Of a stretch of 64,000 nucleotides of DNA, positions 1-46,544 are shown one piece after another (within the stretch, counting starts at the first letter, position 1; the number at the start of each line of letters is the position of its first letter). Below the pieces are notes generated by a model. The model was not told the origin of the DNA, ran no database searches, and saw only the letters and a program-made list of their open reading frames with translations. The position numbers were made by a program, and so were the translations under genes. Origin of the DNA: Macrostomum hystrix (lineage: Eukaryota > Animalia > Platyhelminthes); assembly GCA_950097015.1 (NCBI GenBank), contig CATNEN010000025.1, forward strand, positions 4,278,001 to 4,342,000. The letters are read 5' to 3'.

Positions 1-290
1 CAATGTTTCCGATTGTAGCGATCGATGACTGCCCATCCTCGGTGCTAATCTCCAGCAGACCATTGCCGATTCGCAATAGATTGGCAGAGAACTCATGAGC
101 TGTTTCGTCTCCTTGAATTGTAGCTCTCATGTTTGTTCGTAGATGCAACTTCACAACAGATGGCCACAGGTGAGATGATTTTAGGCAAGCATTAATCTCA
201 TCAGCAGGAGTGCCACGCGGAATCACAGGCAGCGTCTGTCTAAAGTCTCCAGACAGCAGCAGAGTGACACCACCCATCAGTTGATCGCCA
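1..290 (-). mobile_element. PIF1-family helicase fragment, Helitron RepHel type; 5'-truncated, frame runs off the left edge
   Basis: My translation of the minus strand: DQLMGGVTLLLSGDFRQTLPVIPRGTPADEINACLKSSHLWPSVVKLHLRTNMRA...EFSANLLRIGNG. This matches the GDFRQ-LPV, L-NMR and LL-IG-G motifs of Helitron PIF1 helicases. Similarity is lost upstream of ~290. Confidence 0.85.
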
Positions 291-708
291 GCCTCTCTCT
301 TTCTTCTATCCCAGGCTGGCTGGAGAGAAATATAGACCGGAGAGCCCTGCGCACTGGGACGCCACCGCACTCACCGCACTCAGTCTCAGTGCTGCTTGGG
401 GGCCAGTAGACAGTCTAGGGGTTTGGGCTGTGTACATTCACGGCTTGAAATACAATGTACAGTCTAGGGCTTCGGCGCCCGGGAAAGGGAGGGGGTGGCT
501 GTAATAAAATTTGGCCCGCAGAGTGGCGGAGGGGAGTTGGGGTGGCTGTCCTCGGAAAACAAAAAGTGACTCACTTTGAGATGATGCAGCTTTGCTCTGG
601 ATTGAGTAGAGACTAGCAAGATTTGCCCCCCTTCGGGGAGCAGAAATACTTTTAATTCGTCTAGTATAGACTTTTTAGAAGCTGAATTTACAGCTTTTTA
701 AAGCTACT

Positions 709-1812
709 ATGAACCCCCAGTTGACAATGATCCCCCAGTTGACAATGATCCCCCAGTTGACAATGATCCCCCAGTTGACAATGAACCCCCAGTTGACAAT
801 GAACCCCCAGTTGACAATGATCCCCCAGTTGACAATGATCCCCCAGTTCACAATGATCCCCCAGTTGATGATGATCCCCCAGTTGATGATGATCCCCCAG
901 TTGAGAATGATCCCCCAGTTGACAATGATCCCCCAGTTGAGAATGATCCCCCAGTTAACAATGATCCCCCAGTTAACAAAGATCCCCCAATTCACAATGA
1001 TCCCCCAGTTGATGAAGTCTCCCTATTGATGATGATCCCCAGTTAACAATGTTCCTCCAGTTGACAATGTTCCCCCAGTTATCAATGATCCCCCAGTTGA
1101 TGATGATCACCCAGTTGACAATGATCCCACAGTTGACAATGATCCCCCAGTTGACAATGATCCCCCAGTTGACAATGATCCCCCAGTTGATGATGATCCC
1201 CCAGTTGAAAATGATCCCCCAGTTGAAAATGATCCCCCAGTTGACAATGATCCCCCAGTTGAGAATGATCCCCCAGTTGACAATGATCCCCCAGTTAACA
1301 AAGATCCCCCAGTTCACAATGATCCCCCAGTTGATGAAGTCTCCCCATTGATGATGATCCCTAGTTAACAATGTTCCTCCAGTTGACAATGATCCCCCAG
1401 TTGACAATGATCCCCCAGTTGATGATGATCACCCAGTTGACAATGATACCCCAGTTGACAATGATCCCCCAGTTGACAATGATCCCACAGTTGACAATGA
1501 TCCCGCCGGTTGACAATGATACCACAGTTGACAATGAACCCCCAGTTGACAATGATCCCCTAGTTGATGATGATCCCCCAGTTGACAATGATCCCCCAGT
1601 TGACAATGATCCCCAGTTGACAATGAACCCCCAGTTGACAACGATCCCCCAGTTGACAATGATCTCCCAGTTGACAATGATCCCCCAGTTGACAATTATC
1701 CCACAGTTGACAATGATCCCCCAGTTGACAAAGATCCCCCTGTTCACAATGATCCCCCAGTTGACAAAGATCCCCCAGTTCACAATGATCCCCGAGTTGA
1801 CCATGATCCCCC
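709..1812. repeat. 18-bp satellite (CCCCAGTTGACAATGATC)n, left part of an array split by an insertion
   Basis: Directly visible. It accounts for the NWGIIV/MIPQLT ORFs. 1371-1812 is nearly identical to 11503-11944. Confidence 0.97.
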
Positions 1813-1816
1813 TATA

Positions 1817-1831
1817 GGTAGGCGAATGACG
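1817..1831 (+). repeat. Left terminal inverted arm GGTAGGCGAATGACG of the YR element
   Basis: 14/15 match to the reverse complement of 11444-11458. Confidence 0.85.
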
Positions 1832-3402
1832 TTTTTTTGGAAATCTGACGTCCTGGCTGCGTAACTTGACGTCATATTTCATAATTTTCGCAATAGCGTC
1901 AGATTTTGCATCAGAATTGCGTCAGATTTTGCGTGATGAAATCTGACGCGTCATGAAATTGAATAAAAAGTAAGTTAAAATGATTGTTTTGATATGCGCT
2001 AGAATTTAGTACAGTATTAAGTTCCTATAAGTAAATACAGCCACGTTATTCAGGGTGAGAAATGTGACGCGTGCAATGAAAAATGACGCGAGTTACGCTG
2101 AATGACTCGAAAATTAAAACAAAATCACGCGCAATTTTAAATCGCCAATTGTTGCGACTTGCGAAGCTGTTGCAAATATTATTGTGTTATTTGAAACTAG
2201 TTGTTCGTTTGTTGGACTACAAAATGTACAGTGCGCTAAGAAGCTTTAGAATTTGAGGAGATCAAGTTTTAATTGATTTTGCAATTTATTTGAATGACAC
2301 TAAATAATATAGATAGTATGTATAAATTAATACATACCTGTGCTGTATATTCCTGTATACTCATACTGTCAAATGTGTTGAGCCAATGTAATTAAGAGAT
2401 ACATATTTACTCTTTATTTACTAAATGGAAACTCAATTATCCAAGATTGATTTGTAGGCAGGCGTTTGGTCACATGCCAATCTATTTTACTGTAGGCCTA
2501 CTTTTGTATGTTAGGCCTATGTATGCCATGTCTATGCTATTGTAAAGTGAAGATATCTGCAAAGCCAAAGATTTATTATGTTTAAGTCTAACTAGGTAGC
2601 TATATAGTAAGATGGTCAAAGCTTATCTTATATTCTTATATTATCCATCTTGTATTATTGATGTTGAGATAATAAATATAAGAATAAGTGATATAAGATA
2701 TTGACCATCTTATATTAAGATAGTCAACATTATCCTAACTATTGACTAATACTAAACTCAATATCTGTATCCTATGGCAACATAGTATATAATTACTAGA
2801 GATGGAATGAATAGTTTATGAAAATGAATACAAAAAATGGAATATTTAGGTTCATATTTTCCAAATACAATACAAATACAAATATGAAATAGTATCACTG
2901 TCAACTGTCAACAATTATATACAATAACTCATTTATATAATACTCATATCATATACTATATCACCTATTATGCTAGCAAACTGCTTTGTGAAAAGTTTAG
3001 GTATAGCCTAAATATATAAGACATAGAGATATAGCACAAAAATACTTATATCATGCTACTGATTATATAATCATATGATCAGTTACATGTCAATGCTATT
3101 TTCCACTCTAGTCTCAACATGCCTTATAGTCTTGTACACCTAAGTGACCCAACTAAATTCCTTTCTTTTGGGATAATTCACCATGTGAACTATTCATTTT
3201 TGTTAAAACAGATATCTTACATAATTCCTAATACCAAATATAGATACAAATTGGAAAAATAGGCAGATATCAGAATACTGGAATATAGAATATCAAATAT
3301 TTGTTCCATCTTTGATAATTACTCTGTTATATCTCTTTTTTGTATTCCATTTGTGACTTAGTTTTTAGATTATATTAAATTTTCATCTAGATAAATTATA
3401 GA

Positions 3403-6400
3403 ATGCTTCTAAAAATATTGCCCAACTTTGCTCAACATAAATCCCTAAACTTTTTGTTAGGCCTTTGTTTAAAGCTTAATTTTAATAAAGATTTACAGTA
3501 TTTGTTAAATATAGGGTCTTTATATAGTATATATATAGCTTGCTTAAAAATATACATTTTCAGGTTGACTTCTATGTTGGCTGCTGGTAATAGCCAGCAT
3601 GCTCCACAGTCCAGTGAGCCTACCACTGGGACTTGTGTGCCTCAACTTCCAAGCAAATTGATTTCTTTGTCAGATGCAAGCATTGATATTGGCCAGCATG
3701 CTCCACAGTCCAGTGAGCCTACCACTGGGACTTGTGTGCCTCAACTTCCAAGCAAATTAAGTTCTTTGTCAGATGCAAGCATTGGTATTGGCCAGCATGC
3801 TCCACAGTCCAGTGAGCCTACCACTGGGACTTGTGTGCCTCAAGTTCCAAGCAAATTAAGTTCTTTGTCAGATGCAAGCATTGGTATTGGCCAGCATGCT
3901 CCACAGTCCAGTGAGCCTACCACTGGGACTTGTGTGCCTCAACTTCCAAGCAAATTGATTTCTTTGTCAGATGCAAGCATTGATATTGGCCAGCATGCTC
4001 CACAGTCCAGTGAGCCTACCACTGGGACTTGTGTGCCTCAACTTCCAAGCAAATTAAGTTCTTTGTCAGATGCAAGCATTGATATTGGCCAGCATGCTCC
4101 ACAGTCCAGTGAGCCTACCACTGGGACTTGTGTGCCTCAACTTCCAAGCAAATTAAGTTCTTTGTCAGATGCAAGCATTGATATTGGCCAGCATGCTCCA
4201 CAGTCCAGTGAGCCTACCACTGGGACTTGTGTGCCTCAACTTCCAAGCAAATTAAGTTCTTTGTCAGATGCAAGCATTGGTATTGGCCAGCATGCTCCAC
4301 AGTCCAGTGAGCCTACCACTGGGACTTGTGTGCCTCAACTTCCAAGCAAATTAAGTTCTTTGTCAGATGCAAGCATTGGTATTGGCCAGCATGCTCCACA
4401 GTCCAGTGAGCCTACCACTGGGACTTGTGTGCCTCAACTTCCAAGCAAATTAAGTTCTTTGTCAGATGCAAGCATTGGTATTGGCCAGCATGCTCCACAG
4501 TCCAGTGAGCCTACCACTGGGACTTGTGTGCCTCAAGTTCCAAGCAAATTAAGTTCTTTGTCAGATGCAAGCATTGGTATTGGCCAGCATGCTCCACAGT
4601 CCAGTGAGCCTACCACTGGGACTTGTGTGCCTCAACTTCCAAGCAAATTGATTTCTTTGTCAGATGCAAGCATTGATATTGGCCAGCATGCTCCACAGTC
4701 CAGTGAGCCTACCACTGGGACTTGTGTGCCTCAACTTCCAAGCAAATTAAGTTCTTTGTCAGATGCAAGCATTGGTATTGGCCAGCATGCTCCACAGTCC
4801 AGTGAGCCTACCACTGGTTCTTGTGTGCCTCAACTTCCAAGCAAATTAAGTTCTTTGTCAGATGCAAGCATTGGTATTGGCCAGCATGCTCCACAGTCCA
4901 GTGAGCCTACATTTAATGAGAATGACCAGCTTATTTCAAAGTTTCAAGGCAAAATTCATCAGGATTCACTTGCACAGGCTTCAGATGCATTAGCAATTGA
5001 CTTGCTCAATGAACTTAATTCTGCTTGCTATGTCTTGGGCACACATGCAGGCTCAGCATCTGATTGTTCCATCGCCACAAACAATGGAGCTGATGAAAAT
5101 TTTCTTTCCATGCTAGAAAGTGCCAATGAATGTCTGGCTGGTCATGTTGAATCTGCAAGTGAAGAACCTGACTTACATCAGGTTCCAGTTTTATCCGATC
5201 TAAATGGCTCTTCTAATCGCGGTTGCAGTTATGTGTGCTACTTGGATCCAAATCATATTATCAACCAATCAAGAATTGCTGAACATTTTGAAAGGCACCA
5301 CTTTGGAGAAAACATGATAAAGAGTAGTAGTGAAATTCGCCAAGAGCTATATCGGCACAACAAAGTTTTCATTCAGTCTGCTTCAATGGCTACATCAAAA
5401 ATGGCACATGTGGTTGAAGAGCCAGTTAAGCAAGCTCGTGAAAGGCAAGGAAGTGATTTCATTTGCCCCTTTGATCAGTCGCATCGAATTTCAAAGTCTC
5501 GGTTTACTGAACATTTTCAACGTCGCCATATGGGTGAATTTGTTCCAAGTGAGCGAAAGAAGGCCATTGAGTTGGCTAAAGCGTTGACCAGTGAGCAAGC
5601 AGAAGCTCCAAGCTCATCAAATGGCGACTGTCCACTTTGCCATCTACCATTTGCTTATATGGTAAGCCATCTTCGATTTTGGCATGAACTCCAAATCTCA
5701 GATGCACACGAATTGCTAAAAGAAGAAAAGAAAAAAGTAGTCATTAAGCAAGTCCAAGAAAGTTGGGAAGAAAAAGCTAAGAAAAAAGAAGCCCTGAAGC
5801 CTGTAACTGTCAAGCCAACTAGCACGCCAGCCACTGTGCCAACTTTAACAGACTTTGAAGCAAACTTACGAACTTATTTAGGTACGAAGAAGGCTGAAAG
5901 CACATCCCAGCAGATGAGACAAGCTTTGCGTGCTATCATGAACTATATCCAGACTGACAACCTAATAGATGTTATCACTGAATCAAATCGAAGTGCTATT
6001 ACTGCTTTCTTGACTGAGAAGAGTGATAAATTTGCTGATGCATGCAAGCCATATGTTGCGGCATTAGTTCGTCTGGGCGAGTATTTAAAGACGAAGTTCA
6101 ATAAACTAATTACTGAATTGGAACTGACTGCCGAATTGGACTCTTTTAAAATAGCTAGCGCTTGCTATGGAAAGTCTCGTAACCAAGACAAAAAGCGTGC
6201 AGAAATAGCTCGACGGCTCAAATTAGATCGATTCATACTTCATTCAGATGAACTCCAGGCAGTATTTAATGTGATACAAGAGTTTAAAGCCAAAGCTGAG
6301 GACGATCTTGACTCTGAAGAGTGTGTAATATTTCTAGGCTTGAATTTTACCATTTCTCCACAAGGCGCAAATCGTCCTGATGTAGTTTCGAAAGCAAAAG

Positions 6401-7485
6401 TTAGCGAATTTCTGCAGTGGAAGAATGACATTAACATGGATCCTGCCGCATTCTTTGAAGTTCACGAGCACAAGACAGCAGAAGATGGTCCTGTTTTTAT
6501 CTATGCTGCTGACATAAAGGATCTTCTACTTTCGTATGGAGAACATAGGCTTGAGTCTGGTGCGAAGCCGAATGAAAATTTTTTTCTGTTTAAGGCAAGG
6601 AATCACTCGTTTGCAACCTTCCTGCGAGAAAAGAGACGGAAATTCCCGTCACTTCTTGCACTAAGCCGAATATCTCCGAACATAGTTCGGCATGTCTTCG
6701 AAACTAAAAGCCGAGAGGTGAATGACAATGACACGCAACATTTAGTCAACCGTGCTTTGAATCATTCACATGCTACTGCTACAAAGTCGTACATGGCAAG
6801 TACCCAAACACATGCCCGAGCAGCTAGTAAAGCTCTTCAGAACACTATCAGTCATTTTCTCAAGCGAGATGCTGCCAGCTCAAGCGAAACTACTGACCAA
6901 GATCTGCAGAGCACCAGCAGTCAAGTTCTCCAACGAGGTTCAGCCAGCTCAAAGCGAGATACTGCCGGCTCAAAGCGAGATGCTGGCAGCTCAAAGCGAG
7001 ATGCTGCCAGCTCAAAGCGAGATGCTGCCAGCTCAAAGCGAGATGCTGCCAGCTCAAAGCGAGATGCTGCCAGCTCAAGCGAAGCTACTGACAAAGATCT
7101 GCAGAGCACCAGTAGTCAAGTTCTCCAACGAGGTTCATCCGGCTCAAATCGAGATGCTGCCAGCTCAGGAAAAGCTAACAGAGCTAGCGCCCCAAAGCCG
7201 TCGAAATTGCCACGAAATTTCGGAATTGTTGATCTTGATGACGACTCTGATGCTCTTAGTGCCTTTACTGAAGCTAAAAAGCATCCCAGCAAAGAAGACA
7301 CGCATCCAAACACGAAATTTCATGTTGTCACTTTTAATAAGCCAATGGCGGAAAAAAGACGTGCTTCTGATGATAAAAAAGAAAGTAATACGAAGAGTCA
7401 TATAAAAAAAAAGCAGGCGACTGCAACACGAAAAGCTGTGCGAGTCGTACGACTGTGGCGACATTGTATGTGCCAAGTACTCTAA
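3403..7485 (+). CDS. Tyrosine recombinase/integrase with 33-aa repeats, two CHHC-like fingers and a C2H2 finger; probable real start ATG 3574
   Basis: YR motifs: R in GANRPDVV (6373), K in HKT (6472), N-I-V-R-H box (R 6688), H in LNHS (6763), Y in TATKSY (6790). Fingers: CYLDPNH...HFERHH (5236), CPFDQSH...HFQRRH (5464), CPLC...HLRFWH (5629). The first ~55 codons look like AT-rich intron ending at the TTTTCAG acceptor at 3563. Confidence 0.8.
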   Translation: MLLKILPNFAQHKSLNFLLGLCLKLNFNKDLQYLLNIGSLYSIYIACLKIYIFRLTSMLAAGNSQHAPQSSEPTTGTCVPQLPSKLISLSDASIDIGQHAPQSSEPTTGTCVPQLPSKLSSLSDASIGIGQHAPQSSEPTTGTCVPQVPSKLSSLSDASIGIGQHAPQSSEPTTGTCVPQLPSKLISLSDASIDIGQHAPQSSEPTTGTCVPQLPSKLSSLSDASIDIGQHAPQSSEPTTGTCVPQLPSKLSSLSDASIDIGQHAPQSSEPTTGTCVPQLPSKLSSLSDASIGIGQHAPQSSEPTTGTCVPQLPSKLSSLSDASIGIGQHAPQSSEPTTGTCVPQLPSKLSSLSDASIGIGQHAPQSSEPTTGTCVPQVPSKLSSLSDASIGIGQHAPQSSEPTTGTCVPQLPSKLISLSDASIDIGQHAPQSSEPTTGTCVPQLPSKLSSLSDASIGIGQHAPQSSEPTTGSCVPQLPSKLSSLSDASIGIGQHAPQSSEPTFNENDQLISKFQGKIHQDSLAQASDALAIDLLNELNSACYVLGTHAGSASDCSIATNNGADENFLSMLESANECLAGHVESASEEPDLHQVPVLSDLNGSSNRGCSYVCYLDPNHIINQSRIAEHFERHHFGENMIKSSSEIRQELYRHNKVFIQSASMATSKMAHVVEEPVKQARERQGSDFICPFDQSHRISKSRFTEHFQRRHMGEFVPSERKKAIELAKALTSEQAEAPSSSNGDCPLCHLPFAYMVSHLRFWHELQISDAHELLKEEKKKVVIKQVQESWEEKAKKKEALKPVTVKPTSTPATVPTLTDFEANLRTYLGTKKAESTSQQMRQALRAIMNYIQTDNLIDVITESNRSAITAFLTEKSDKFADACKPYVAALVRLGEYLKTKFNKLITELELTAELDSFKIASACYGKSRNQDKKRAEIARRLKLDRFILHSDELQAVFNVIQEFKAKAEDDLDSEECVIFLGLNFTISPQGANRPDVVSKAKVSEFLQWKNDINMDPAAFFEVHEHKTAEDGPVFIYAADIKDLLLSYGEHRLESGAKPNENFFLFKARNHSFATFLREKRRKFPSLLALSRISPNIVRHVFETKSREVNDNDTQHLVNRALNHSHATATKSYMASTQTHARAASKALQNTISHFLKRDAASSSETTDQDLQSTSSQVLQRGSASSKRDTAGSKRDAGSSKRDAASSKRDAASSKRDAASSKRDAASSSEATDKDLQSTSSQVLQRGSSGSNRDAASSGKANRASAPKPSKLPRNFGIVDLDDDSDALSAFTEAKKHPSKEDTHPNTKFHVVTFNKPMAEKRRASDDKKESNTKSHIKKKQATATRKAVRVVRLWRHCMCQVL
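3595..4909 (+). repeat. 99-bp coding tandem repeat, ~13.3 copies (33 aa QHAPQSSEPTTGTCVPQLPSKLSSLSDASIGIG)
   Basis: Directly visible; copies near-identical and in frame. Confidence 0.97.
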
Positions 7486-7735
7486 CTATCCCTTCTGGCC
7501 TGCAATGATCTGCAACGATCCACGAAGCAACAGTCACTTCCGGCAACAAGAGCTGCATGTGCAGTTCTTTGAAAGTCCACCTACTCGTATGTGGATCAAG
7601 CTTGGAAATGTTAAGCCATTTGATTCATCTGACAGGCCACAGCAGGCTGATTCAGAGCTACTCGCTGCATTCACAACCGCTTACGAAGCTACACTGTTCC
7701 TTCCCGATGAACGACTGAATCGCTATCTTGTTTAG
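7406..7735 (+). CDS. PWWP domain in the +1 frame relative to the YR ORF; probably its true C-terminus
   Basis: Frame after the A9 run (7404-7412) reads KKSRRLQHEKLCESYDCGDIVCAKYSNYPFWPAMICNDP...LHVQFFESPPTRMWIKLGNVKPF...RYLV*. This fits the GD-V-AK---YP-WPA and HVQFF signatures of PWWP domains. Confidence 0.85.
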   Translation, partial: KKSRRLQHEKLCESYDCGDIVCAKYSNYPFWPAMICNDPRSNSHFRQQELHVQFFESPPTRMWIKLGNVKPFDSSDRPQQADSELLAAFTTAYEATLFLPDERLNRYLV

Positions 7736-7779
7736 AACCTCCTGCGCGCAATTTTTCTAAGCTTTCTTAGGAAAACCGG

Positions 7780-10395
7780 GCATTAAGATGCGAGTATTTA
7801 CTTTTTGTCAATAATGAAGCGCTGTAATTCAGCCATATTTGGCGCATTTAATGTTTCGTTCAATGTGTTTTTTTTCAACCATTTTTATGCGCAACTCGCT
7901 TCCTATGCTACAGCTCAATCTTCATCAGTGCCGCATTAAACAGCGACTCAGAGTTGGGTTTTCACTCACTATATTACTTTCCAGTAGAATGAAAGAAAAT
8001 TCGCTTCTAAATTGTCACATGAATCTAATTTTCCATAGCCCACATCTGAGGCGTCATTTTTATAAACATGCAGTAGTTTTCCATAGCCCACATCTGACGC
8101 GTCATTTTTCTAAACATCGTAAGTGAAACCTTGCTCTGATCGCGGGCATTGAGATACTTATTTTTTGTCAATAATGAAGCGCTGTAATTCAGCCATATTT
8201 GGCGCATTTAATGTTTCGTTCATTGTGCTATTTTTCAACCATTTTTATGCGCAACTCGCTTCCTATGCTACAGCTCAATCTTCATCAGTGCCGCATTAAA
8301 CAGCGACTCAGAGTTGGGTTTTCACTCACTATATTACTTTGCAGTAGAATGAAAGAAAATTCGCTTCTAAATTGTCACATGAATCTAATTTTCCATAGCC
8401 CACATCTGAGGCGTCATTTTTATAAACATGCAGTAGTTTTCCATAGCCCACATCTGACGCGTCATTTTTCTAAACATCGTAAGTGAAACCTTGCTCTGAT
8501 CGCGGGCATTGAGATACTTATTTTTTGTCAATAATGAAGCGCTGTTATTTAGCCATATTTGGCGCATTTAATTTTTCGTTCATTGTGCTATTTTTCAACC
8601 ATTTTTATGCGCAACTCGCTTCCTACGCTACAGCTCAATCTTCATCAGTGCCGCATAAAACAGCGACTCAGAGTTGGGTTTTCACTCACTATATTACTTT
8701 CCAGTAGAATAAAAGAAAATTCGCTTCTAAATTGTCACATGAATCTAATTTTCCATAGCCCACATCTGAGGCGTCATTTTTATAAACACGCAGTAGTTTT
8801 CCATAGCCCACATCTGACGCGTCATTTTTCTAAACACACAGTAGTTTTCCATAGCTCACAGCTGACGCGTCATTTTTATAAACACGCAGTAGTTTTCCAT
8901 AGCCCACATCTGACGCGTCATTTTTATAAACACGCAGTAGTTTTCCATAGCCCACATCTGACGCGTCATTTTTCTAAACACACAGTAGTTTTCCATAGCC
9001 CACAGCTGACGCGTCATTTTTCTGAACACGCAGTAGTTTTCCATAGCCCACATCTGACGCGTCATTTTTCTAAACATGCAGTAGTTTTCCATAGCCCACA
9101 GCTGACGCGTCATTTTTCTAAACACACAGTAGTTTTCCATAGCCCACATCTGACGCGTCATTTTTATAAACATCGTAAGTGAAACCTTGCTCTGATCGCG
9201 GGCATTGAGATACTTATTTTTTGTCAATAATGAAGCGCTGTAATTCAGCCATATTTGGCGCATTTAATGTTTCGTTCATTGTGCTATTTTTCAACCATTT
9301 TTATGCGCAACTCGCTTCCTATGCTAGAGCTCAATCTTCATCAGTGCCGCATTAAACAGCGACTCAGAGTTGGGTTTTCACTCACTATATTACTTTGCAG
9401 TAGAATGAAAGAAAATTCGCTTCTAAATTGTCACATGAATCTAATTTTCCATAGCCCACATCTGACGCGTCATTTTTCTAAACACACAGTAGTTTTCCAT
9501 AGCCCACATCTGACGCGTCATTTTTCTAAACACACAGTAGTTTTCCATAGCCCACAGCTGACGCGTCATTTTTCTAAACACGCAGTAGTTTTCCATAGCC
9601 CACATCTGACGCGTCATTTTTCTAAACATCGTAAGTGAAACCTTGCTCTGATCGCGGGCATTGAGATACTTATTTTTTGTCAATAATGAAGCGCTGTAAT
9701 TCAGCCATATTTGGCGCATTTAATGTTTCGTTCAATGTGTTTTTTTTCAACCATTTTTATGCGCAACTCGCTTCCTACGCTACAGCTCAATCTTCATCAG
9801 TGCCGCATTAAACAGCGACTCAGAGTTGGGTTTTCACTCACTATATTACTTTCCAGTAGAATGAAAGAAAATTCGCTTCTAAATTGTCACATGAATCTAA
9901 TTTTCCATAGCCCACATCTGAGGCGTCATTTTTCTAAACACACAGTAGTTTTCCATAGCCCACATCTGACGCGTCATTTTTCTAAACACACAGTAGTTTT
10001 CCATAGCCCACATCTGACGCGTCATTTTTCTAAACACACAGTAGTTTTCCATAGCCCACAGCTGACGCGTCATTTTTCTAAACACACAGTAGTTTTCCAT
10101 AGCCCACAGCTGACGCGTCATTTTTCTAAACACGCAGTAGTTTTCCATAGCCCACATCTGACGCGTCATTTTTCTAAACATCGTAAGTGAAACCTTGCTC
10201 TGATCGCGGGCATTGAGATACTTATTTTTTGTCAATAATGAAGCGCTGTAATTCAGCCATATTTGGCGCATTTAATTTTTCGTTCATTGTGCTATTTTTC
10301 AACCATTTTTATGCGCAACTCGCTTCCTATGCTACAGCTCAATCTTCATCAGTGCCGCATTAAACAGCGACTCAGAGTTGGGGTTTTCACTCTCT
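7780..10395. repeat. Nested tandem array inside the YR element: ~264-bp spacer plus a variable number (2,2,9,4,6) of 48-bp units, each with a TGACGCGTCA palindrome or a single-base variant
   Basis: Equivalent positions at 7839, 8199, 8559, 9255, 9711 and ~10263 give spacings 360, 360, 696, 456, 552 = 360 + n x 48. Confidence 0.95.
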
Positions 10396-11443
10396 ATATA
10401 TTCTCTTAATTTCGCTTTCAAATAATCAAGCAAATAAAGTTTTCCATGGCCTACATCTTTTTTTAAAGTTTTTGTTGTTTAAAGTTGAAAGCATATCCAA
10501 ATCAAGTTCGGCTTTGTGTTTTCAACGAATTTGTCGTCCTATACAACTTCTGGGTAGTAAACTACTAGCGTACAAGTAGTCGTTAACATGGAATGTGCTG
10601 CAAATTTATGAATTTGTTCTAATATTTCTTTTTTATTGACACTCGTAAAATTAAAAAGTGCATGAAGAAGATACTGAATTTGCACATTTTTTACTATAGT
10701 ACTGAATGAGGCAGTGAAGTATGAAGTTGATAAATCTGACGCGTCATTTTTAGGGGTCTCAGTTTGACATTCATGGAACTGACACAGTAAGTGAAATCTT
10801 CTATGGAAATCTAACGCGTCATTCCTTACGCAGTACTAAACTTGAAGTTTTAATTTAGTAGAAAAATGACGCATCGTTCTTTAGCACGTTAAAGTATTTA
10901 GTACTTCGCACTGAAAGTTGAAGTACTGTACATACTCGTAGTACAGTATTCTATTCTTCCGCACCCACATGTAGTAACTTTCATTTAGTTTCAGTATTAG
11001 TATTAGGTAAGTAAATTAGTATTAGTATTACTATATTCATAGCATTATCGACGTTATCGTACATTTCTCCAAATTGGACATCAGATTAAACTGCTCGGTA
11101 GTGCACTGCATATTTTGATTTCTAGCTTCTGTAAGTGATAAATTTTTAAATACCGAATCGTGTACCGAAGTTACCCATCATCGTGTGTATATTTCCATTA
11201 ATATTTATTGTTCAACAGACAGGACTCTGTAGTTCAGAATCTATATACAACCAAGTTTCTGTGCATTGGTTTAAGAGTGAAATGCAAGTGCTGACAAACT
11301 CTGCTATAAAATGGTTAGGGTTAGGGTTACGGTTTGCGGAATTTAAATTTTTGTGTCGCTACCATAAGACTACACTAGCGTCATTTTAGCGTCATTTTTC
11401 AGTACTTTCTAAAAATTATCGCTACGTCAGAATTCCACTTCTG

Positions 11444-11458
11444 CGTCATTCACCTACC
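11444..11458 (-). repeat. Right terminal inverted arm CGTCATTCACCTACC of the YR element
   Basis: Reverse complement GGTAGGTGAATGACG versus left GGTAGGCGAATGACG. Confidence 0.85.
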
Positions 11459-11460
11459 CC

Positions 11461-12400
11461 ATTTGATGATGATTCCCCATTGATGAAGATCCCCAGTAGA
11501 CAATGTTCCCCCAGTTGACAATGATCCCCCAGTTGACAATGATCCCCCAGTTGATGATGATCACCCAGTTGACAATGATACCCCAGTTGACAATGATCCC
11601 CCAGTTGACAATGATCCCACAGTTGACAATGATCCCGCCGGTTGACAATGATACCACAGTTGACAATGAACCCCCAGTTGACAATGATCCCCTAGTTGAT
11701 GATGATCCCCCAGTTGACAATGATCCCCCAGTTGACAATGATCCCCAGTTGACAATGAACCCCCAGTTGACAACGATCCCCCAGTTGACAATGATCTCCC
11801 AGTTGACAATGATCCCCCAGTTGACAATTATCCCACAGTTGACAATGATCCCCCAGTTGACAAAGATCCCCCTGTTCACAATGATCCCCCAGTTGACAAA
11901 GATCCCCCAGTTCACAATGATCCCCGAGTTGACCATGATCCCCCATTTGATGATGATTCCCCATTGATGAAGATCCCCAGTAGACAATGTTCCCCCAGTT
12001 GACAATGATCCCCCAGTTGACAATGAACCCCCAGTTGACAATGAACCCCCAGTTGACAATGATCCCCCAGTTGACAATGATCCCCCATTTGACAATGATC
12101 CCCCAGTTGACAATGATCCCACAGTTGACAATGATCCCCCAGTTGACAATGATCCCCAAGTTGACCATGATCCCCCATTTGATGATGATTCCCCAGTTGA
12201 CAATTATCCCCCAGTTGACCATTACCCTCTAATTGACAATGATCCCCTAGTTCACAACGATCCCCCAGTTGACAATGATCCCCCAGTTGACAATTATCCC
12301 CCAGCTTACCAAGATCCTCCAGTTGACAATTTTCCCCAGTTTACCTTGATCCCCATTTTGATGATGACTCCCAATTGACGTTGATTTTTCAAACGCTGGG
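11461..12400. repeat. 18-bp satellite, right part of the split array, with a 484-bp higher-order period
   Basis: Same monomer as 709-1812; ATTTGATGATGATTCCCCATTG recurs at 11461 and 11945. Confidence 0.97.
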
Positions 12401-12409
12401 TTAGCCAAG

Positions 12410-13910
12410 ATTCAAACTCAGGTTTCGCTATGTTTTAAACCCTGGTGGGCTATGATTCAAACTCTCGTTTTACCATGATTCAAACTCTAATTTAGCCATG
12501 ATTCAAACTCTATGTAGCCATGATTCAAACTCTGGTTTAGCCATGATTCAGACGCTGTGATGATTTAAAGTCTGCTTTAGCCATGATTCAAACTCTGTTT
12601 TAGCCATGATTTAAACTCTGGTGTAGCCATGATTCAAACTCTGGTTTCGCCTTGATTCAAATTTAGCCATGATTCAGACTCTAGGTTAGCCATGATTCAA
12701 ACGTTGCGTTAGCCATGATTCAGACTCTGGTTTAGCCATGATTCAAACTCTGGTTTAGCCATGATTCAAACTCTGGTTTAGCCATGATTCAAACTCTGGT
12801 TTAGCCATGATTCAGACGCTGTGATGATTTAAAGTCTGCTTTAGCCATGATTCAAACTCTGGTTTAGCCATGATTCAAACTCTGGTTTAGCCATGATTCA
12901 GACGCTGTGATGATTTAAAGTCTGCTTTAGCCATGATTCAAACTCTGTTTTAGCCATGATTTAAACTCTGGTGTAGCCATGATTCAAACTCTAGTTTCGC
13001 CTTGATTCAAATTTAGCCATGATTCAAACGTTGGTTTAGCCATGATTCAGACTCTGGTTTAGCCATGATTCAAACTCTGGTTTAGCCATGATTCAAACTC
13101 TGGTTTAGCCATGATTCAGACGCTGTGATGATTTAAAGTCTGCTTTAGCCATGATTCAAACTCTGTTTTAGCCATGATTTAAACTCTGGTGTAGCCATGA
13201 TTCAAACTCTGGTTTCGCCTTGATTCAAATTTAGCCATGATTCAGACTCTAGGTTAGCCATGATTCAAACGTTGCTTTAGCCATGATTCAGACTCTGGTT
13301 TAGCCATGATTCAAACTCTGGTTTAGCCATGATTCAAACTCTGGTTTAGCCATGATTCAAACTCTGGTTTAGCCATGATTCAGACGCTGTGATGATTTAA
13401 AGTCTGCTTTAGCCATGATTCAAACTCTGTTTTAGCCATGATTTAAACTCTGGTGTAGCCATGATTCAAACTCTAGTTTCGCCTTGATTCAAATTTAGCC
13501 ATGATTCAAACGTTGGTTTAGCCATGATTCAGACTCTGGTTTAGCCATGATTCAAACTCTGGTTTAGCCATGATTCAAACTCTGGTTTAGCCATGATTCA
13601 GACGCTGTGATGATTTAAAGTGTGCTTTAGCCATGATTCAAACTCTGTTTTAGCCATGATTTAAACTCTGGTGTAGCCATGATTCAAACTCTAGTTTCGC
13701 CTTGATTCAAATTTAGCCATGATTCAGACTCTAGGTTAGCCATGATTCAAACGTTGGTTTAGCCATGATTCAAACTCTGGTTTAGCCATGATTCAAACTC
13801 TGGTTTAGCCATGATTCAGACGCTGTGATGATTTAAAGTCTGCTTTAGCCATGATTCAAACTCTGTTTTAGCCATGATTTAAACTCTGGTGTAGCCATGA
13901 TTCAAACTAT
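12410..13910. repeat. 23-bp minisatellite (TTAGCCATGATTCAAACTCTGGT)n with higher-order variants
   Basis: Directly visible, e.g. units at 12732 and 12755; recurring variant CAGACGCTGTGATGATTTAAAGTCTGCT. Confidence 0.95.
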
Positions 13911-14149
13911 GCCTACACATCGGCTATTTCGACTGTTGGTTAGTGGGTGCAAAAATCAGCCTTATAAAATGAATTCTCAAAGTTCTGGCTTTGTACAATG
14001 AAGTGAGAAAATAGAGTACACTCAGTCTCGCGGTTGGTTGTGTACATTTATTTCCAATTTGTCTCCAGAGTGCAGGCTTCTAACTCAGTCAGCGAGGGGG
14101 TGTTGCGCAATTTGACGATGCAATTCCAATTCAGCGGCAGTGAGTAAAA

Positions 14150-17774: not shown

Positions 17775-18530
17775 TCATTCGATCTTCTTCTGTGGCCCGA
17801 TCGAACCACTGCAGCTGGATTGGGACAGATTTGAGCTGACCTCCTTCAGCCCCCGCTGCTTCTGCTGCTTCAACAGCTTCAGATCGCTGTCGGTCTGTTT
17901 TGCGGGTTTCTGATTGTCATGATTTTCTTTCTGCTGGTCGCCGTTGTCCAGATATTTCCTAAGTCGACGCTCAATGAACGGCAGTCTGGAGCCGACATTA
18001 GCCAAGGAGTTGATCCAGCTGGGGAACTGCGCCTGCGGACAGAGCAGCTGGCCAAACGTGGCGCTGAAGTGATTGCAGTTGCGCCTCAGCAAGTCGTAGA
18101 ACGTCCCGGCGAACAGGCTCCGGCCCAGCCATTCGCTAATCAGCAGCACGTCTTCGCGCTTGTAGTCAGTGTAGCCAAGCTGCACGGACTTCTTGAAAGT
18201 CATCGCGCACTCCATAGATTTGACATCTTTTGGGCGCATTCTGAATACTCCGCAATCGCCGAATGCGATCTCAACTCCGTACACCTCCAGGCCGGTGTGG
18301 TAGGCAGCCAGGCGGAGTCGCTTGGTGACGCGGTTGGTCCAGTGCAGGTCGTACACGCTGATGAACACGGGCTCTCTGCAGCCGGGAGTTGGCGCGACTG
18401 GCTGACCGTCCGGTCGCATGAGCCGCTGTTGAGCGCTGGCCGTGCCGATGTGCAGGCGACCGCTGGGACTGCGGCACAGCTGGTGCTCCATCTTTATTTG
18501 CTCCATTGGATATGCGATATTTCGCTGCAT
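17775..18530 (-). CDS. DESI2: PPPDE-family peptidase (deSUMOylating isopeptidase 2-like), intronless
   Basis: VFISVYDL, YHTGLEVYG (catalytic His), Y-LL-RNCNHFS (catalytic Cys) and P-WIN-LA motifs. Confidence 0.85.
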   Translation of the reverse strand: MQRNIAYPMEQIKMEHQLCRSPSGRLHIGTASAQQRLMRPDGQPVAPTPGCREPVFISVYDLHWTNRVTKRLRLAAYHTGLEVYGVEIAFGDCGVFRMRPKDVKSMECAMTFKKSVQLGYTDYKREDVLLISEWLGRSLFAGTFYDLLRRNCNHFSATFGQLLCPQAQFPSWINSLANVGSRLPFIERRLRKYLDNGDQQKENHDNQKPAKQTDSDLKLLKQQKQRGLKEVSSNLSQSSCSGSIGPQKKIE

Positions 18531-21097: not shown

Positions 21098-22451
21098 TCA
21101 GGCCTGATAGGTGGACGAGGCCACCTGACCGCCGCGACCAGTCCAGTTGGTGTGGACAAACTTGCCCGGCTGGTCCACCAGCTCGTACTGATGGGCGCCG
21201 AAGTAGTCCCGCTGGGCCTGCAACAGGCTGGCTGGCAATCTGCCGCATCTGAAGCCGTCGTAGAAGCTCAGGGCGGCCGAGAAGGCCGGGCAGGGCACTC
21301 CGGCAGTGACAGCGGCGGCTAGACAGCGACGCCAACCGTCGTTAGCCTGACGCATGACGCCAGAGAAGAACGGATCCAACAGCAGGCTGTCCAGCTGCGG
21401 ATTGCGCTCGAAGGCAGCCTTGATGCGGCCGAGGAACTGGCTGCGGATGATGCAGCCGCCGCGCCACATCAGGGCGATGCCGCCCAAGTTGAGCTTCCAG
21501 CCAGTCTCGGCCGATTGAGTTTGCATCAGCATGTAGCCCTGGGCGTAGCTGACTATTTTCGAGGCGTACAGGGCCTGGTGGACGTCTTCGATGAAGGCGG
21601 CGAGATTAGCCGGCCTGGCGGGCGGCTGCGACGGTCCGGGCAGGGCAGCGGAGGCGCGCACCCGCTCGGCCTTGTAGCGGCTCAGATGACGGGCGAAGAC
21701 GGCTTCGGCAATGAGCGTCAACGGGGTGCCGGCGTGCAGGCTGGTCACCACTGTCCACTTGCCTGTGGGCGTCAGTGGTATTTCTAGTAGTAGTACCCGA
21801 GTATAAAATACTCCTAACATCCTAACCCTTAGTGGCAGAGCTGTCTAACGCGTTTGCCTATCGCACCAAGCTCCGTGAGCTCGAATCCGCTGCGAAGCCA
21901 CATTCATTGGGGACGCAGCCGCGGAGAGGGCTTGGGGGCTAGTCACAATAAAAGTGTAACACGGCCTGACGATGAGAAAGTCAGGGTAGATATACGAGTA
22001 CATACATTTGTGTGTGCCTGAGTACGATATGTGTGCGTGTGCGCTCAGGAGTCAGTGGAATTGACAGATTGGATTAGAAGACGAAGGTATTACCATAATT
22101 GTTTGTAGTAACGGAATTAGTCATTAGTAATACTTGTAGCAGTTGCAGTTCCAATAACACCTACTTAGACGAAGCAGCAGAAACTCTAACAGACCAATTC
22201 AAGAAGGAATTGTTATAAAGACCCACAATACCACTAGTGGCTACTAACCAGTGCCCTTCTGTCCGGCCACGTCCAGAATCTTGTCCACAGTGTGCTGCCC
22301 GTCTTCGTCGCGGTGGCGCAGAATATCAGCAGTTATTTCGATTAGAAACGAGTTCAGATCGCCGTCGTTCCAGCGGCTGAAAACGTCGGCCATTTCGTCG
22401 TTGCTAAGGCCGCAGACCTCCTTTAAAAGGTGGTAGGCCTCGCAGATTAGC

Positions 22452-22484
<33 letters not shown>

Positions 22485-25400
22485 TAGAGAATATGAATTG
22501 CGCTGAGCATGTAGCTAATGTGCAAGAATATGACTAAACATAGATTTTTAAGACTTAGCTTTTAATCAGAAACAATTAAATACTGAGCGATTCTGAGCGA
22601 TTCGATTACGCGGATCAGATGAAGAGTCGGATGAAAATTCCTGAAGAATTGCAGAATGTGAATCCTTGAACTATTGGAGGATGAGAATCCCTGAACAATA
22701 GGAGGATGAGAATCGCTGAACAATAGGAGGATGAGAATCCCTGAAGAACTGGAGGATGAGAATCCCTGAACAATAGGAGGATGAGAATCCCTGAACAATA
22801 GGAGGATGAGAATCCCTGAACAATAGGAGGATGAGAATCCCTGAACAATAGGAGGATGAGAATCGCTGAACAATAGGAGGATGAGAATCCCTGAAGAACT
22901 GGAGGATGAGAATCCCTGAACAATAGGAGGATGAGAATCCCTGAACAATAGGAGGATGAGAATCGCTGAACAATAGGAGGATGAGAGTCCCTGAAGAACT
23001 GGAGGATGAGAATCCCTGAACAATAGGAGGATGAGAATCCCTGAACAATAGGAGGATGAGAATCCCTGAACAATAGGAGGATGAGAATCCCTGAACAATA
23101 GGAGGATGAGAATCCCTGAACAATAGGAGGATAAGAATCCCTGATGAACTGGAGGATGAGAATCCCTGAACAATAGGAGGATGAGAATGCCTGAACAATA
23201 GGAGGATGAGAATCCCTGAACAATAGGAGGATGAGAATCCCTGAAGAACTGGAGGATGAGAATCCCTGAACAATAGGAGGATGAGAATCCCTGAACAATA
23301 GGAGGATAAGAATCCCTGATGAACTGGAGGATGAGAATCCCTGAACAATAGGAGGATGAGAATCCCTGAACAATAGGAGGATGAGAATCGCTGAACAATA
23401 GGAGGATGAGAGTCCCTGAAGAACTGGAGGATGAGAATCCCTGAACAATAGGAGGATGAGAATCCCTGAACAATAGGAGGATGAGAATCCCTGAACAATA
23501 GGAGGATGAGAATCGCTGAACAATAGGAGGATGAGAATCCCTGAACAATAGGAGGATGAGAATCCCTGAACAATAGGAGGATGAGAATCCCTGAACAATA
23601 GGAGGATGAGAATCCCTGAAGAACTGGAGGATGAGAATCCCTGAACAATAGGAGGATGAGAATCCCTGAACAATAGGAGGATGAGAATCCCTGAACAATA
23701 GGAGGATGAGAATCCCTGAACAATAGGAGGATGAGAATCCCTGAACAATAGGAGGATGAGAATCCCTGAACAATAGGAGGATGAGAATCCCTGAAGAACT
23801 GGAGGATGAGAATCCCTGAACAATAGGAGGATGAGAATCCCTGAACAATAGGAGGATGAGAATCCCTGAACAATAGGAGGATGAGAATCCCTGAAGAACT
23901 GGAAGATGAGAATCCATGAAGAACTGGAGAATGAGAATGCCTGAACAATTGGAGGATGAGAATGCCTGAACAATAGGAGGATGAGAATCCCTGAAGAACT
24001 GGAGGATGAGAATCCCTGAACAATAGGAGGATGAGAATCCCTGAACAATAGGAGGATGAGAATCCCTGAACAATAGGAGGATGAGAATCCCTGAAGAACT
24101 GGAGGATGAGAATCCCTGAACAATAGGAGGATGAGAATCCCTGAACAATAGGAGGATGAGAATCCCTGAACAATAGGAGGATGAGAATCCCTGAAGAACT
24201 GGAAGATGAGAATCCATGAAGAACTGGAGAATGAGAATGCCTGAACAATTGGAGGATGAGAATGCCTGAACTATTGGAGGATGAGAATCCCTGAACAATA
24301 GGAGGATGAGAATCCCTGAACAATAGGAGGATGAGAATCCCTGAACAATAGGAGGATGAGAATCCCTGAACAATAGGAGGATGAGAATCCCTGAACAATA
24401 GGAGGATGAGAATCCCTGAACAATAGGAGGATGAGAATCCCTGAAGAACTGGAGGATGAGAATCCCTGAACAATAGGAGGATGAGAATCCCTGAACAATA
24501 GGAGGATGAGAATCCCTGAACAATAGGAGGATGAGAATCCCTGAAGAACTGGAAGATGAGAATCCATGAAGAACTGGAGAATGAGAATGCCTGAACAATT
24601 GGAGGATGAGAATGCCTGAACAATAGGAGGATGAGAATCCCTGAAGAACTGGAAGATGAGAATCCATGAAGAACTGGAGAATGAGAATGCCTGAACAATT
24701 GGAGGATGAGAATGCCTGAACTATTGGAGGATGAGAATCCCTGAACAATAGGAGGATGAGAATCCCTGAACAATAGGAGGATGAGAATCCCTGAACAATA
24801 GGAGGATGAGAATCCCTGAACAATAGGAGGATGAGAATCCCTGAACAATAGGAGGATGAGAATCCCTGAACAATAGGAGGATGAGAATCCCTGAAGAACT
24901 GGAAGATGAGAATCCATGAAGAACTGGAGAATGAGAATGCCTGAATAATTGGAGAATGAGAATGCCTGAACAATAGGAGGATGAGAATCCCTGAAGAACT
25001 GGAAGATGAGAATCCATGAAGAACTGGAGAATGAGAATGCCTGAACAATTGGAGGATGAGAATGCCTGAACTATTGGAGGATGAGAATCACAGAAGAACC
25101 AGATCTATCAAACAATGAAATATGAATAATTAGATTGATTACAAGGAATCAACAAGAACTCGTGTGCAGACGTTACCATCTTGACAAAGTGGCCGGCGCC
25201 ACCCTCGCCCACCCAGTCGCAGCAAGGCTGGTCGTCCGCTTTGGCGCAAATCGATTGAAAGATAGGCCTGATTCGCGGCCAAGCGTCCGGATGACCGCCG
25301 GGCATCAAAGAAGGGCCGTGCCTGGCGCCCTCCTCGCCGCCGGAGACACCGGAGCCGACAAACAAAAGACCGGCGGCATTGCAGCGCTCGAAACGGCGCT

Positions 25401-32800: not shown

Positions 32801-33291
32801 AGACAAGTCAGCCGGCTGTGCCAGTGTGCGATGATCCAGACATTGTCGACGACTCGGACTCCGTGCAGATTGTCTCTCTATCGCCTCCGCCACCGCAGCC
32901 AAAGCGAACAGAGCAGCCGAGACTCAGCCATAGCTCGGCGTTGCATCAGCCTCGGGCACAGCTGACTGCAGCCCAACAGCCGGTTGTCGATTTGGACAGC
33001 TTGTCGGCCAAGATTAAGCAGCCGCGACCGCTGCCTAATTTCTTTTCTACTGCGTCAACTTCCGCCGCTGCCAACGCTTCGTCGTCTTCTAATTTTGCGT
33101 TGGCCGATCGAATTCAACTGCAACGGCCGACAAATTTGTTTAGTCGCAACTTGCAGCAGCAGCAGAAGCGGTTGCCGGGTCCAACGGTTGTCAAGACAGC
33201 CTATGGCAGCGGAGGAGTCCCTCGTTTCACTTCTCAACAGCCTCCGCGCATAGGCACTGTTAGCTCGGATTCTGTCATTCAGATTGACTGA
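29878..33291 (+). CDS. DAXX: Death domain-associated protein 6 (Daxx, H3.3 chaperone); exons ~29878-30792, 31196-31515, 32415 (or 32295)-33291
   Basis: Histone-binding domain motifs EMSLDDL...S.YLQEDRLK, FPD...VL.IV, FKDVG.QLQ.RR..DL, DPA.SD..L..RL.RN. Acidic region and terminal SIM-like SDSVIQID. Start codon and third-exon acceptor uncertain. Confidence 0.88.
30839..31151 (+). mobile_element. hAT MITE, degenerate short copy with ~10 units of the 16-bp satellite, in Daxx intron 1
   Basis: CAGGGATCGG...GCGGGCCAG..CGGCC.TCGAAGCTCCCAAATCCGGC...AGTATCCTG matches the reverse complement of 40820-40917. Followed by TCCCCTGTCTCATCTC-type units and ends CCCCTG. Confidence 0.7.
31636..32200. repeat. 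23-bp minisatellite (CCCCT[G/A]CAATCGTCTGTCATAAA)n in Daxx intron 2
   Basis: Directly visible. Confidence 0.95.
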
Positions 33292-45000: not shown

Positions 45001-45783
45001 GCTAACCTACAGCTGATAACGGGCAAACTCTAAGCTGATTATTCACTGAGATTGGGTACACGCATTCGCATCCTTAGCCAGCCACCCCACCGCCCTCGCC
45101 CAGGAGTCCGCTACCCGCTGCTTCGCCGTCGCATCTGCACAATGCGCAACGCCCGCCGCATCATCTTCATTCTGGTGACAATAAGCTACGCGCTCTGCCT
45201 GTGGAAGCCGTTCATGTCCGTCACGAAGCAATCTAGTGACAACTCGAGTGTCTGTCTGTCAAAAACTGACGACCGCGTCCTCATGTTCGCCACAGACGCC
45301 GCCTACGCCGCCCTGCTGACCGCCATCCCATCCGCTATCATCTTCGTGTTCAACGCGCTGATTGCTCGCCAGCTGCTGGTGGTTCGTCACAGGTCGGCCA
45401 GCAACGCGGAACGAGCCAATCACGACGTGGCGGGTCAACAGTTTGCCTGCCTGCTGGTTCTGGTGTCCACCGCCTTCCTGTTGCTCACCTGCCCCTACTA
45501 TGTGGTCTGGCTAACCAGCTTTGTCATCAAGTTCAAGCTCATGCGCAGCGTGTCAACCATGGGCATCACCGATCTGGCCGACAGCGGCGATGGCATTCGT
45601 CAGGGCCACTACGACAGCGCCCTGACTGTCACCAGGACCATCTACTACCTGACCTACAGCGTGAACTTCTTTCTCTATTCCTACGCCAGCGCCTATTTTC
45701 GCAACGAGATGAAGCGAATGTTCACCGTGAAGCAGACCAGAGACCGGGCCAGGCGCTTCTACCGGCACCATCACCACGGCAGC

Positions 45784-45818
<35 letters not shown>

Positions 45819-46227: not shown

Positions 46228-46544
46228 GAACTCCTTCTCAACCTGCACCTTCAAGCCAGTGGCACTCTCTGTCGATGGCCTTTGAATTTTTAATCGACCT
46301 AAACGCAAAGGACCTAGTTAGATTTGCGAACTTCAATCCTGTTGACATAATTTTTAGTTTATACCGATACCGATATTCAGTATCGATCCGATGTTTAAGG
46401 CTTTTCTTCACATTATGCAAGTTTTACTTATGTTATTGGCGCTATGTGGCATTCTACAACTAGTGAACTCGATTGCAATATCTACAGCACATCACAGTTA
46501 CTACTCGTGTTACAATCATATTACAAAACAACAGGCAGAACTGT

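Follow-up and report, generated by a model that had tools for sequence, protein, structure and literature searches.

Cryptons encode a tyrosine recombinase without a reverse transcriptase (RT), carry terminal direct repeats of 4-6 bp as recombination substrates and have been proposed to pass through a circular intermediate (Goodwin 2003; Kojima & Jurka 2011; PMC3212892). The authors of this survey could not demonstrate monophyly of the Crypton groups, and Platyhelminthes are absent from the phyla listed for them (PMC3212892). Recombinases of the animal groups CryptonA and CryptonI match DUF3504 (E <= 8e-12), and these groups have no C-terminal domain. The survey found no terminal repeats in animal Cryptons and cites, for recombinase sites in general, 11-13-bp inverted repeats set 6-8 bp apart (PMC3212892). 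No defined recombination site is known for animal Cryptons. Here we describe an element from the flatworm Macrostomum hystrix, at positions 1813-11460 on the forward strand (+) of a 64,000-nt stretch (hereafter "the window," in whose coordinates positions are given unless another locus is named; assembly GCA_950097015.1, contig CATNEN010000025.1, positions 4,278,001 to 4,342,000 of the forward strand). It is probably a macrostomid flatworm DNA transposon, Crypton-like, that is mobilized by its own tyrosine recombinase and would move via a circle. The group to which it belongs is rare, flatworm-centered and apparently uncatalogued, and published descriptions of the animal groups CryptonA and CryptonI do not fit it.

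The likeness to Cryptons lies in a recombinase without RT or DDE transposase, in the lack of long terminal repeats and in CCCC direct repeats (PMC3212892; PMC13465315). Unlike Cryptons, however, the element adds CHHC-like and C2H2-like zinc fingers, a downstream PWWP domain and 14-15-nt inverted arms by its ends, and its recombinase is without the His of the R-H-R-Y tetrad. It departs from CryptonA and CryptonI in particular on DUF3504, on the downstream PWWP and on its terminal CCCC with inverted arms. A first-pass annotation, made from the letters alone, had called this a Crypton-like tyrosine-recombinase DNA element without RT, a call that its short terminal direct repeats and single recombinase open reading frame (ORF) uphold, and had not recognized the architecture from described families. 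The finger, recombinase and PWWP layout is absent from the Crypton descriptions consulted, and we found no report pairing PWWP with a Crypton or tyrosine recombinase, no paper pairing CHHC fingers with a tyrosine recombinase and nothing substantive linking Macrostomum to Cryptons.

The segment is a discrete insertion that interrupts an 18-nt satellite. Its 9648 nt include a CCCC at the right end (11457-11460), and the other copy of this 4-nt direct repeat, the proposed crossover core, which is common to the target, stands at 1809-1812 (+). When the 300 nt to the left of 1813 were joined to the 300 nt to the right of 11460, the product (i.e., the flanks without the element) agreed perfectly with the next satellite unit (junction 11944/11945), for 300 nt left of the join and for 82 nt right of it. 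Moving the ends by -4 to 0 nt gave an equally good fit and any other shift a poorer one, which makes the boundary ambiguity exactly CCCC. The uninterrupted target, which reads …GATCCCCC|ATTTG…, lies at 11941-11948 (+) in the next 484-nt higher-order unit of the satellite; the "empty site" is thus a paralogous repeat unit, not an allele. With that reading of the empty site, the precise ends and clean target reported by the first-pass annotation stand. Its suggestion of recent activity lacks support for the window copy, since homogeneous tandem repeats do not date a transposition.

The recombinase spans 5842-6822 (+), a domain of ~330 aa that Pfam does not recognize and that comprises an N-terminal helical (core-binding-like) part and a catalytic domain. 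On its modeled fold and invariant residues, this domain is a tyrosine recombinase. An AlphaFold (AF2) model built from the family alignment (mean predicted local distance difference test score, pLDDT, 78, and >90 across most of the catalytic part) has the two-domain fold of these enzymes, helical core-binding plus catalytic. Compared with the PDB by Foldseek, its top ~30 matches are all tyrosine recombinases, among them XerA (1.2e-4), lambda Int, XerD, XerH, Cre, Tn1549 Int and IntI, in alignments of ~350 columns that, given the target lengths, span both target domains; against a viral library (BFVD), nearly all matches are integrases. The family profile itself has XerA as its best PDB match (E 0.009), in an alignment that takes in the second catalytic Arg as well as the His-Tyr motif. 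Across seven diverged family members R991, K1024, R1096, H1121 and Y1130 are invariant, and the aligned relatives have the motifs GNAxRPDV, HKT, YRxxxET and LxH…A.QSY in common. The five invariant columns coincide exactly with nucleotide positions R6373, K6472, R6688, H6763 and Y6790, i.e., with the very residues that the first-pass annotation had picked as catalytic, and the fold prediction likewise bears out its recombinase assignment.

Relatives of this protein are few. An exhaustive phmmer search with aa 640-1160 as query found only 13 among 1.84 billion representative sequences; word-seeded homologue searches with the same region and with alignment A2 gave no relatives, presumably owing to an excess of low-complexity words among the candidates, and a search for related loci with alignment A4 gave one uninformative 2.5-kb metagenome contig. 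The closest are hypothetical proteins of Macrostomum lignano, PAA84835.1/PAA66829.1 (38% identity) and PAA91811.1/PAA87763.1 (25%), over the matched stretches. Each of these two best-annotated M. lignano relatives has two or three >90%-identical copies on different contigs: loci L001 and L004 share 99% identity along 9.4-10.5 kb, as do L003 and L005 along about 8 kb. Homology ends abruptly in each pair, the neighboring genes are unrelated and the loci are non-syntenic. The M. lignano loci are dispersed transposon copies rather than homeologous host genes, and they demonstrate the mobility of the family.

The M. lignano elements are 8-10 kb long, with one long ORF that encodes N-terminal repeats, fingers, recombinase and a basic low-complexity tail. 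Long tandem arrays follow the ORF in L001 and L004, while the large repeats of L003 and L005 are 444-nt units in the 5' part; at L003 10448-13603 and L005 9660-12335, six to seven tandem 444-nt copies repeat the first coding segment, in numbers that differ between the loci. The PAA84835.1/PAA66829.1 elements have the same CCCC, TATAGG and CCTATA ends and the same GTCATTTT arrays as the window element. In contrast to both M. lignano pairs, the window element has a PWWP (none was found in the relatives), and blastn detects no DNA similarity between it and the M. lignano loci. Members of the family also occur beyond the sequenced Macrostomum genome: two of its loci, L002 and L007 (proteins P0002 and P0003), are short contigs from one environmental metagenome sample, ENA ERZ23491819.

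Despite this lack of DNA similarity, the window element has the design of its ends in common with L001 and L004. In the window, a candidate left arm, GGTAGGCGAATGACG at 1817-1831 (+), begins 4 nt (TATA) inside the left CCCC, and a candidate right arm, GGTAGGTGAATGACG at 11444-11458 (-), overlaps the right CCCC by 2 nt; the arm 15-mer has just two occurrences in the window, one here and an inverted one at the right end (0.09 expected by chance). The junctions read CCCC|TATAGGTAGGCGAATGACG on the left and CGTCATTCACCTA|CCCC on the right in the window, and CCCC|TATAGGCACGTTTATGAC and GTCATAAACGTG|CCCC in L001 and L004. All have CCCC at both ends and TATAGG following the left CCCC, and in all of them a 14-15-nt inverted repeat is placed +4 nt inside the left CCCC and -2 nt into the right one. 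Because of this asymmetric placement, ends that are joined head to tail with one CCCC have a 6-nt center, CCTATA, and the window element and L001 each then read arm, CCTATA, inverted arm. The arms are complementary at 13/14 positions in the window and at 14/14 in L001, values that 0/300 shuffles reached. The center is identical in the two elements, while their arms differ at most positions and yet remain complementary within each element. Such a pattern would be expected of a recombinase core site, and the arm-CCTATA-arm geometry agrees with that cited in the Crypton literature, 11-13-bp inverted repeats set 6-8 bp apart (PMC3212892). The metagenome relative L002 (31% identity) likewise starts CCC|TATAGG plus an arm, and then has six GTCAT motifs within 200 nt; the ends of L003 and L005 differ, with a CC or CCAT repeat and TTACAG-type motifs. 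Separately, a solitary GTGCC-CCCTATAG-GGCAC lies at 3340-3358 of L001, upstream of the M. lignano element by 3.85 kb; apart from a single added base on either side it looks like that element's joined-end core, GTGCC-CCTATA-GGCAC, and may be chance, a pseudo-site or a remnant.

A second set of motifs is concentrated within the element. Of the 31 GTCATTTT in the 64 kb of the window, 29 fall inside it, 31/31 in L001 and 41/42 in L004 likewise fall inside the respective elements, and all 21 TGACGCGTCA of the window are internal too. They are distributed over a 5' subterminal region (1813-2100, unstranded) dense in TGACG/GCGTCA-type motifs, with one TGACGCGTCA at 1944; over 3' arrays (7798-10180, +) of 360/456-nt units made of 48-nt subrepeats, each with TGACGCGTCATTTTT; and over a 3' subterminal region (10700-11443, unstranded) with further GCGTCA and GTCATTTT motifs. 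Clusters of GTCATTTT thus stand beside both ends and in tandem arrays, the units being 48 nt in the window (within TGACGCGTCATTTTT) and 80 or 190 nt in M. lignano, and GTCAT, a part of GTCATTTT, makes up the outer half of every core arm as well. We propose these clusters as putative accessory binding sites. A perfect TGACGTCA at 1867-1874 and the many TGACGCGTCA palindromes resemble bZIP/CRE-type sites, and host transcription factors might bind TGACGCGTCA and TGACGTCA, instead of or besides the element's protein.

Well-studied recombinases give these two kinds of site a context. The joined ends, with ~14-nt inverted arms around an asymmetric 6-nt center, are like the sites of Cre/loxP, Flp/FRT and XerCD/dif, and the fold matches agree; unlike in those systems, the target shares CCCC only and has no recognizable arms, and the window protein is ~4x larger, with extra domains. 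In lambda Int and Tn916/Tn1549, the circle has the complete core and the integrated ends have one element arm each, and a separate N-terminal DNA-binding domain reads extra sites near the ends. By analogy with lambda Int and Tn916, the GTCATTTT clusters and the zinc fingers would be candidate accessory sites and their reader, although the element's motif also occurs in long internal arrays (20-40 copies) that have no counterpart there.

On this basis, we propose that the recombinase would pair both ends and exchange strands within the CCCC repeats, thereby releasing a circle whose junction would be the full core (14-nt arm, CCTATA, inverted arm) and leaving the donor with a single CCCC, as in the observed empty site; the circle would then integrate at another chromosomal CCCC. 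Because each integrated end has one element arm only, excision probably needs help, and for the same reason the GTCAT(TTT) motifs near the ends and in the arrays are put forward as accessory ("arm-type") sites, which the N-terminal zinc fingers may bind. The PWWP, if fused, could tether the recombinase to H3K36-methylated nucleosomes and so bias the choice of target.

The PWWP (PF00855) identified by the first-pass annotation is a strong match: the recombinase and PWWP frames were searched as separate pieces, not artificially joined, and the piece at 7406-7732 scores E 1.3e-14 (54.9 bits vs a cut-off of 25.6). It is nearest to NSD2 PWWP1 and the MSH6 PWWP, with whose Y, W and F its own Y, W and F align; these columns, we take from known PWWP structures, form the methyl-lysine cage. 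Its reading frame, 7406-7735 (+), is +1 relative to the main ORF and comprises 109 codons and a stop at 7733-7735. The two frames, offset by one base, meet at an A9 homopolymer (7404-7412, +), which is the sole homopolymer between 7406 and about 7455, where the frame switch must fall. The PWWP adjoins the main ORF on the same strand, and the open frames overlap by 80 nt only. Candidate short GT-AG introns bridging the frames near A9, sought by eye, would be 29 and 32 nt long, the wrong length class, and were rejected. We lean toward the view that the PWWP is, or recently was, a C-terminal fusion of the recombinase, as its position abutting the ORF on the same strand, a frame open from A9 to the natural end of the domain, the lack of an own start codon ahead of it, and a strong, intact domain all suggest. 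The self-targeting by chromatin reading that the first-pass annotation put forward would be plausible for such a fusion. A histone-mark reader is coupled to an integration enzyme, steering the choice of target, in the chromodomain integrases of chromoviruses and in the tethering of lentiviral integrase by the LEDGF/p75 PWWP; here, by contrast, the pair would be a PWWP reader and a tyrosine recombinase, and their coupling is unproven because of the one-base frame offset. The satellite site gives no support for H3K36me-guided targeting, because the abundance of CCCC alone could explain it. Transposons are known to have captured histone readers, chiefly Chromo and PHD domains (bioRxiv 10.1101/2021.11.30.470311).

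Several results weigh against the reading of this element as a transposon that moves by its own recombinase. The usual His of HxxR is absent family-wide (Asn in the window protein, Thr or Arg in the relatives), and because this residue, three before the second Arg, is missing, the catalytic set is a pentad, not a hexad. Neither Phage_integrase (PF00589; E <= 10) nor DUF3504 was matched by the whole ORF or by the recombinase part in Pfam, so that these two of the profile comparisons envisaged by the first-pass annotation gave no match for the window protein and the call rests on fold and conserved residues; the closest approach to Phage_integrase is that of a distant relative, P0011, at 25.9 bits vs a cut-off of 27.1. 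A blastn search of the rest of the 64-kb window found no second copy of the element. No circle junction or excision product was seen, and the circle is a step that we infer. Core and targets share CCCC only, compared with the 6-nt center defined by the arms; with just these 4 nt in common, the second strand exchange would have to cross mismatches (i.e., heterology is tolerated) or be resolved by replication. The joined ends of L003 and L005 have no significant ungapped inverted repeat. Finally, the PWWP of the window copy is out of frame by one base, and no PWWP was found in L001 or L002 (tblastn), in the ORFs of the L001 and L003 elements, or in the relatives' proteins (Pfam). These last two points also speak for the possibility that the PWWP is dead cargo, picked up from a host gene of NSD or MSH6 type as a fragment that is untranslated and has no part in transposition. 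So do the lack of an own start codon ahead of the domain and its greatest similarity, which is to the host-type PWWPs of NSD2 and MSH6. Yet a frame open for 109 codons from exactly the A9 run to the natural domain end, the strength of the match with Y, W and F residues equal to those of NSD2, and the same-strand overlap of 80 nt with the recombinase ORF all speak against this, and a one-base difference within a 9-nt homopolymer commonly stems from assembly error or may be very recent. We therefore hold the dead-cargo explanation to be doubtful, though worth keeping in view.

Explanations that deny the recombinase its role in mobility fare worse. The 15-nt inverted repeat near both ends, together with a CCCC that stands on both sides of the element and once in the empty site (formally a 4-bp duplication pattern), could point to a terminal inverted repeat (TIR) element moved in trans by a DDE transposase, with the recombinase as a passenger, for which the Mariner-Crypton composite MarCry-1_FO is a precedent (PMC3212892). 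This is improbable: no DDE domain is present in the element, the CCCC is invariant, being found at all three independent insertions (window, L001, L004), the recombinase's catalytic residues are all kept across 25-39%-identical relatives, and the inverted repeats are offset unequally from CCCC (+4 and -2 nt), an asymmetry that is conserved with CCTATA in the M. lignano family and so is in keeping with a recombinase core site rather than with transposase ends. Domestication has befallen Crypton recombinases more than once, as in ZMYM, KCTD1 and QRICH1 (PMC3212892), and with one copy only in the window and relatives at low copy number in the protein collection, the locus might be taken for a host gene, i.e., a zinc-finger, recombinase-derived PWWP chromatin protein that is no longer mobile. 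Set against this are the discrete insertion into a satellite in which a paralogous empty site is intact, catalytic residues that are kept, unlike in DUF3504 proteins, relatives that are 99%-identical copies with sharp ends at non-syntenic loci, and the conserved cis motifs and end architecture, which together make domestication more improbable still. The most remote of these explanations is a decayed retroelement of DIRS/Ngaro type that has lost its RT, these being other recombinase-bearing animal elements: no frame holds a remnant of RT, RNase H or methyltransferase, the split direct repeats or inverted terminal repeats with an internal complementary region that distinguish DIRS, Ngaro, PAT and VIPER from the window element are missing, and an RT-less layout with one intact ORF is common to three diverged families.

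If the Crypton-like transposon is accepted as the best account, a larger picture can be sketched, although we offer it tentatively. The family may be a deep, uncatalogued lineage that is still active in macrostomids, with a heterobivalent recombinase whose fingers would read GTCATTTT and whose body would read the lox-like core; one branch may have gained an NSD/MSH6-type PWWP that reads H3K36-methylated chromatin among CCCC targets. To our knowledge, Crypton transposition has never been reconstituted, and the element has, besides a new domain layout, an unusually legible recombination site. The family thereby offers an explicit and testable site, arm-CCTATA-arm with a CCCC crossover, in which the arms of two elements without mutual DNA similarity have changed together and kept their complementarity. 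The circle model becomes testable with it, as does the reading of accessory sites by added zinc fingers. If the PWWP is translated, the transposon would itself supply the histone reader that steers its tyrosine recombinase, in a natural parallel to retroviral integration guided by LEDGF, and a eukaryote-native recombinase with a short target could interest genome engineers.

The main ORF, 3403-7485 (+), encodes 1360 aa with repeats, fingers, the tyrosine recombinase and a low-complexity tail; its true start is probably M58 at nt 3574, near a rise in GC at about 3500. Ahead of it lies an AT-rich non-coding leader, 2101-3573 (+), of 26-33% GC and with no ORF of >=70 aa, a candidate promoter, untranslated region or intron. 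The N-terminal part of the protein is a tandem repeat (3585-4910, +; 13.4 copies of a 99-nt, 33-aa unit, 98% matching), as the first-pass annotation had it. N-terminal tandem repeats and a repetitive basic C-terminal tail occur in every full-length member, with mutually unrelated repeat sequences and with N-terminal units of 33 aa here, 8 aa in P0001 (aa ~85-200) and ~23 aa in P0002 (aa ~75-200); judged by these comparisons, the N-terminal repeat region appears to be a recurrent, fast-turning-over part without evident function.

Two CHHC-like fingers (aa 612-633 and 688-709) follow at 5236-5529 (+), and zf-U11-48K (PF05253) matches here in two stretches (E 1.5e-7; 31.6 bits vs a cut-off of 21.1), with the CHHC fingers of GTSF1 among the matches of the family profile. 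The two fingers named by the first-pass annotation are therefore present, but their ligands are C-H-H-H, the fourth being His rather than Cys in both. The C2H2-like finger that it also named is found at 5629-5685 (+; aa 743-761), with the short spacing C-x2-C-x9-H-x4-H, and the S/R/D-rich linker proves to be a tail with 7-aa repeats (6943-7082, +; 6.7 copies of a 21-nt unit of S, K, R, D and A). Its "one long coding unit" is accurate from the repeats through the recombinase, which share a single ORF, but not for the PWWP, which is in the +1 frame. As it had reported for RT, gag, DDE and capsid, none of these domains, nor RNase H or methyltransferase, is encoded by any ORF of the element, and no Rfam family falls within 1-14000. 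Some ORFs that consist of the 48-nt repeats gave sub-threshold Pfam matches (HEM4, HTH_50, GtrA and others), which we attribute to the repetition itself and reject as artifacts.

The surroundings of the element are animal DNA, with exons or ORFs of several host genes among dense tandem repeats. The host loci, at 17775-18530 (-), 21098-21820 (-), 32284-33291 (+), 37151-37648 (+), 45052-46227 (+) and 54212-63856 (-), encode a PPPDE peptidase, a 6-phosphogluconate dehydrogenase C-terminal domain, a DAXX histone-binding domain, two pieces of rhodopsin-type receptors and fibronectin-III repeats. The neighboring PPPDE ORF has as its best match, among 5.8 billion proteins searched, a Macrostomum lignano protein with 65% identity, in keeping with the animal origin that the first-pass annotation had assumed. 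The 18-nt satellite (1-1812 and 11461-12330; monomer about CCCCCAGTTGACAATGAT) is built into the 484-nt higher-order unit, adjacent units being identical across hundreds of bases, and each monomer has a C5 run and hence a CCCC of the type used as the element's target. Many other mini- and microsatellite arrays, with 23 nt among their periods, lie at 12388-13900, 22562-25048, 39819-43228, 46444-47001 and 51380-53259; they yield long spurious ORFs and make the window unusually rich in tandem repeats between ordinary host genes.

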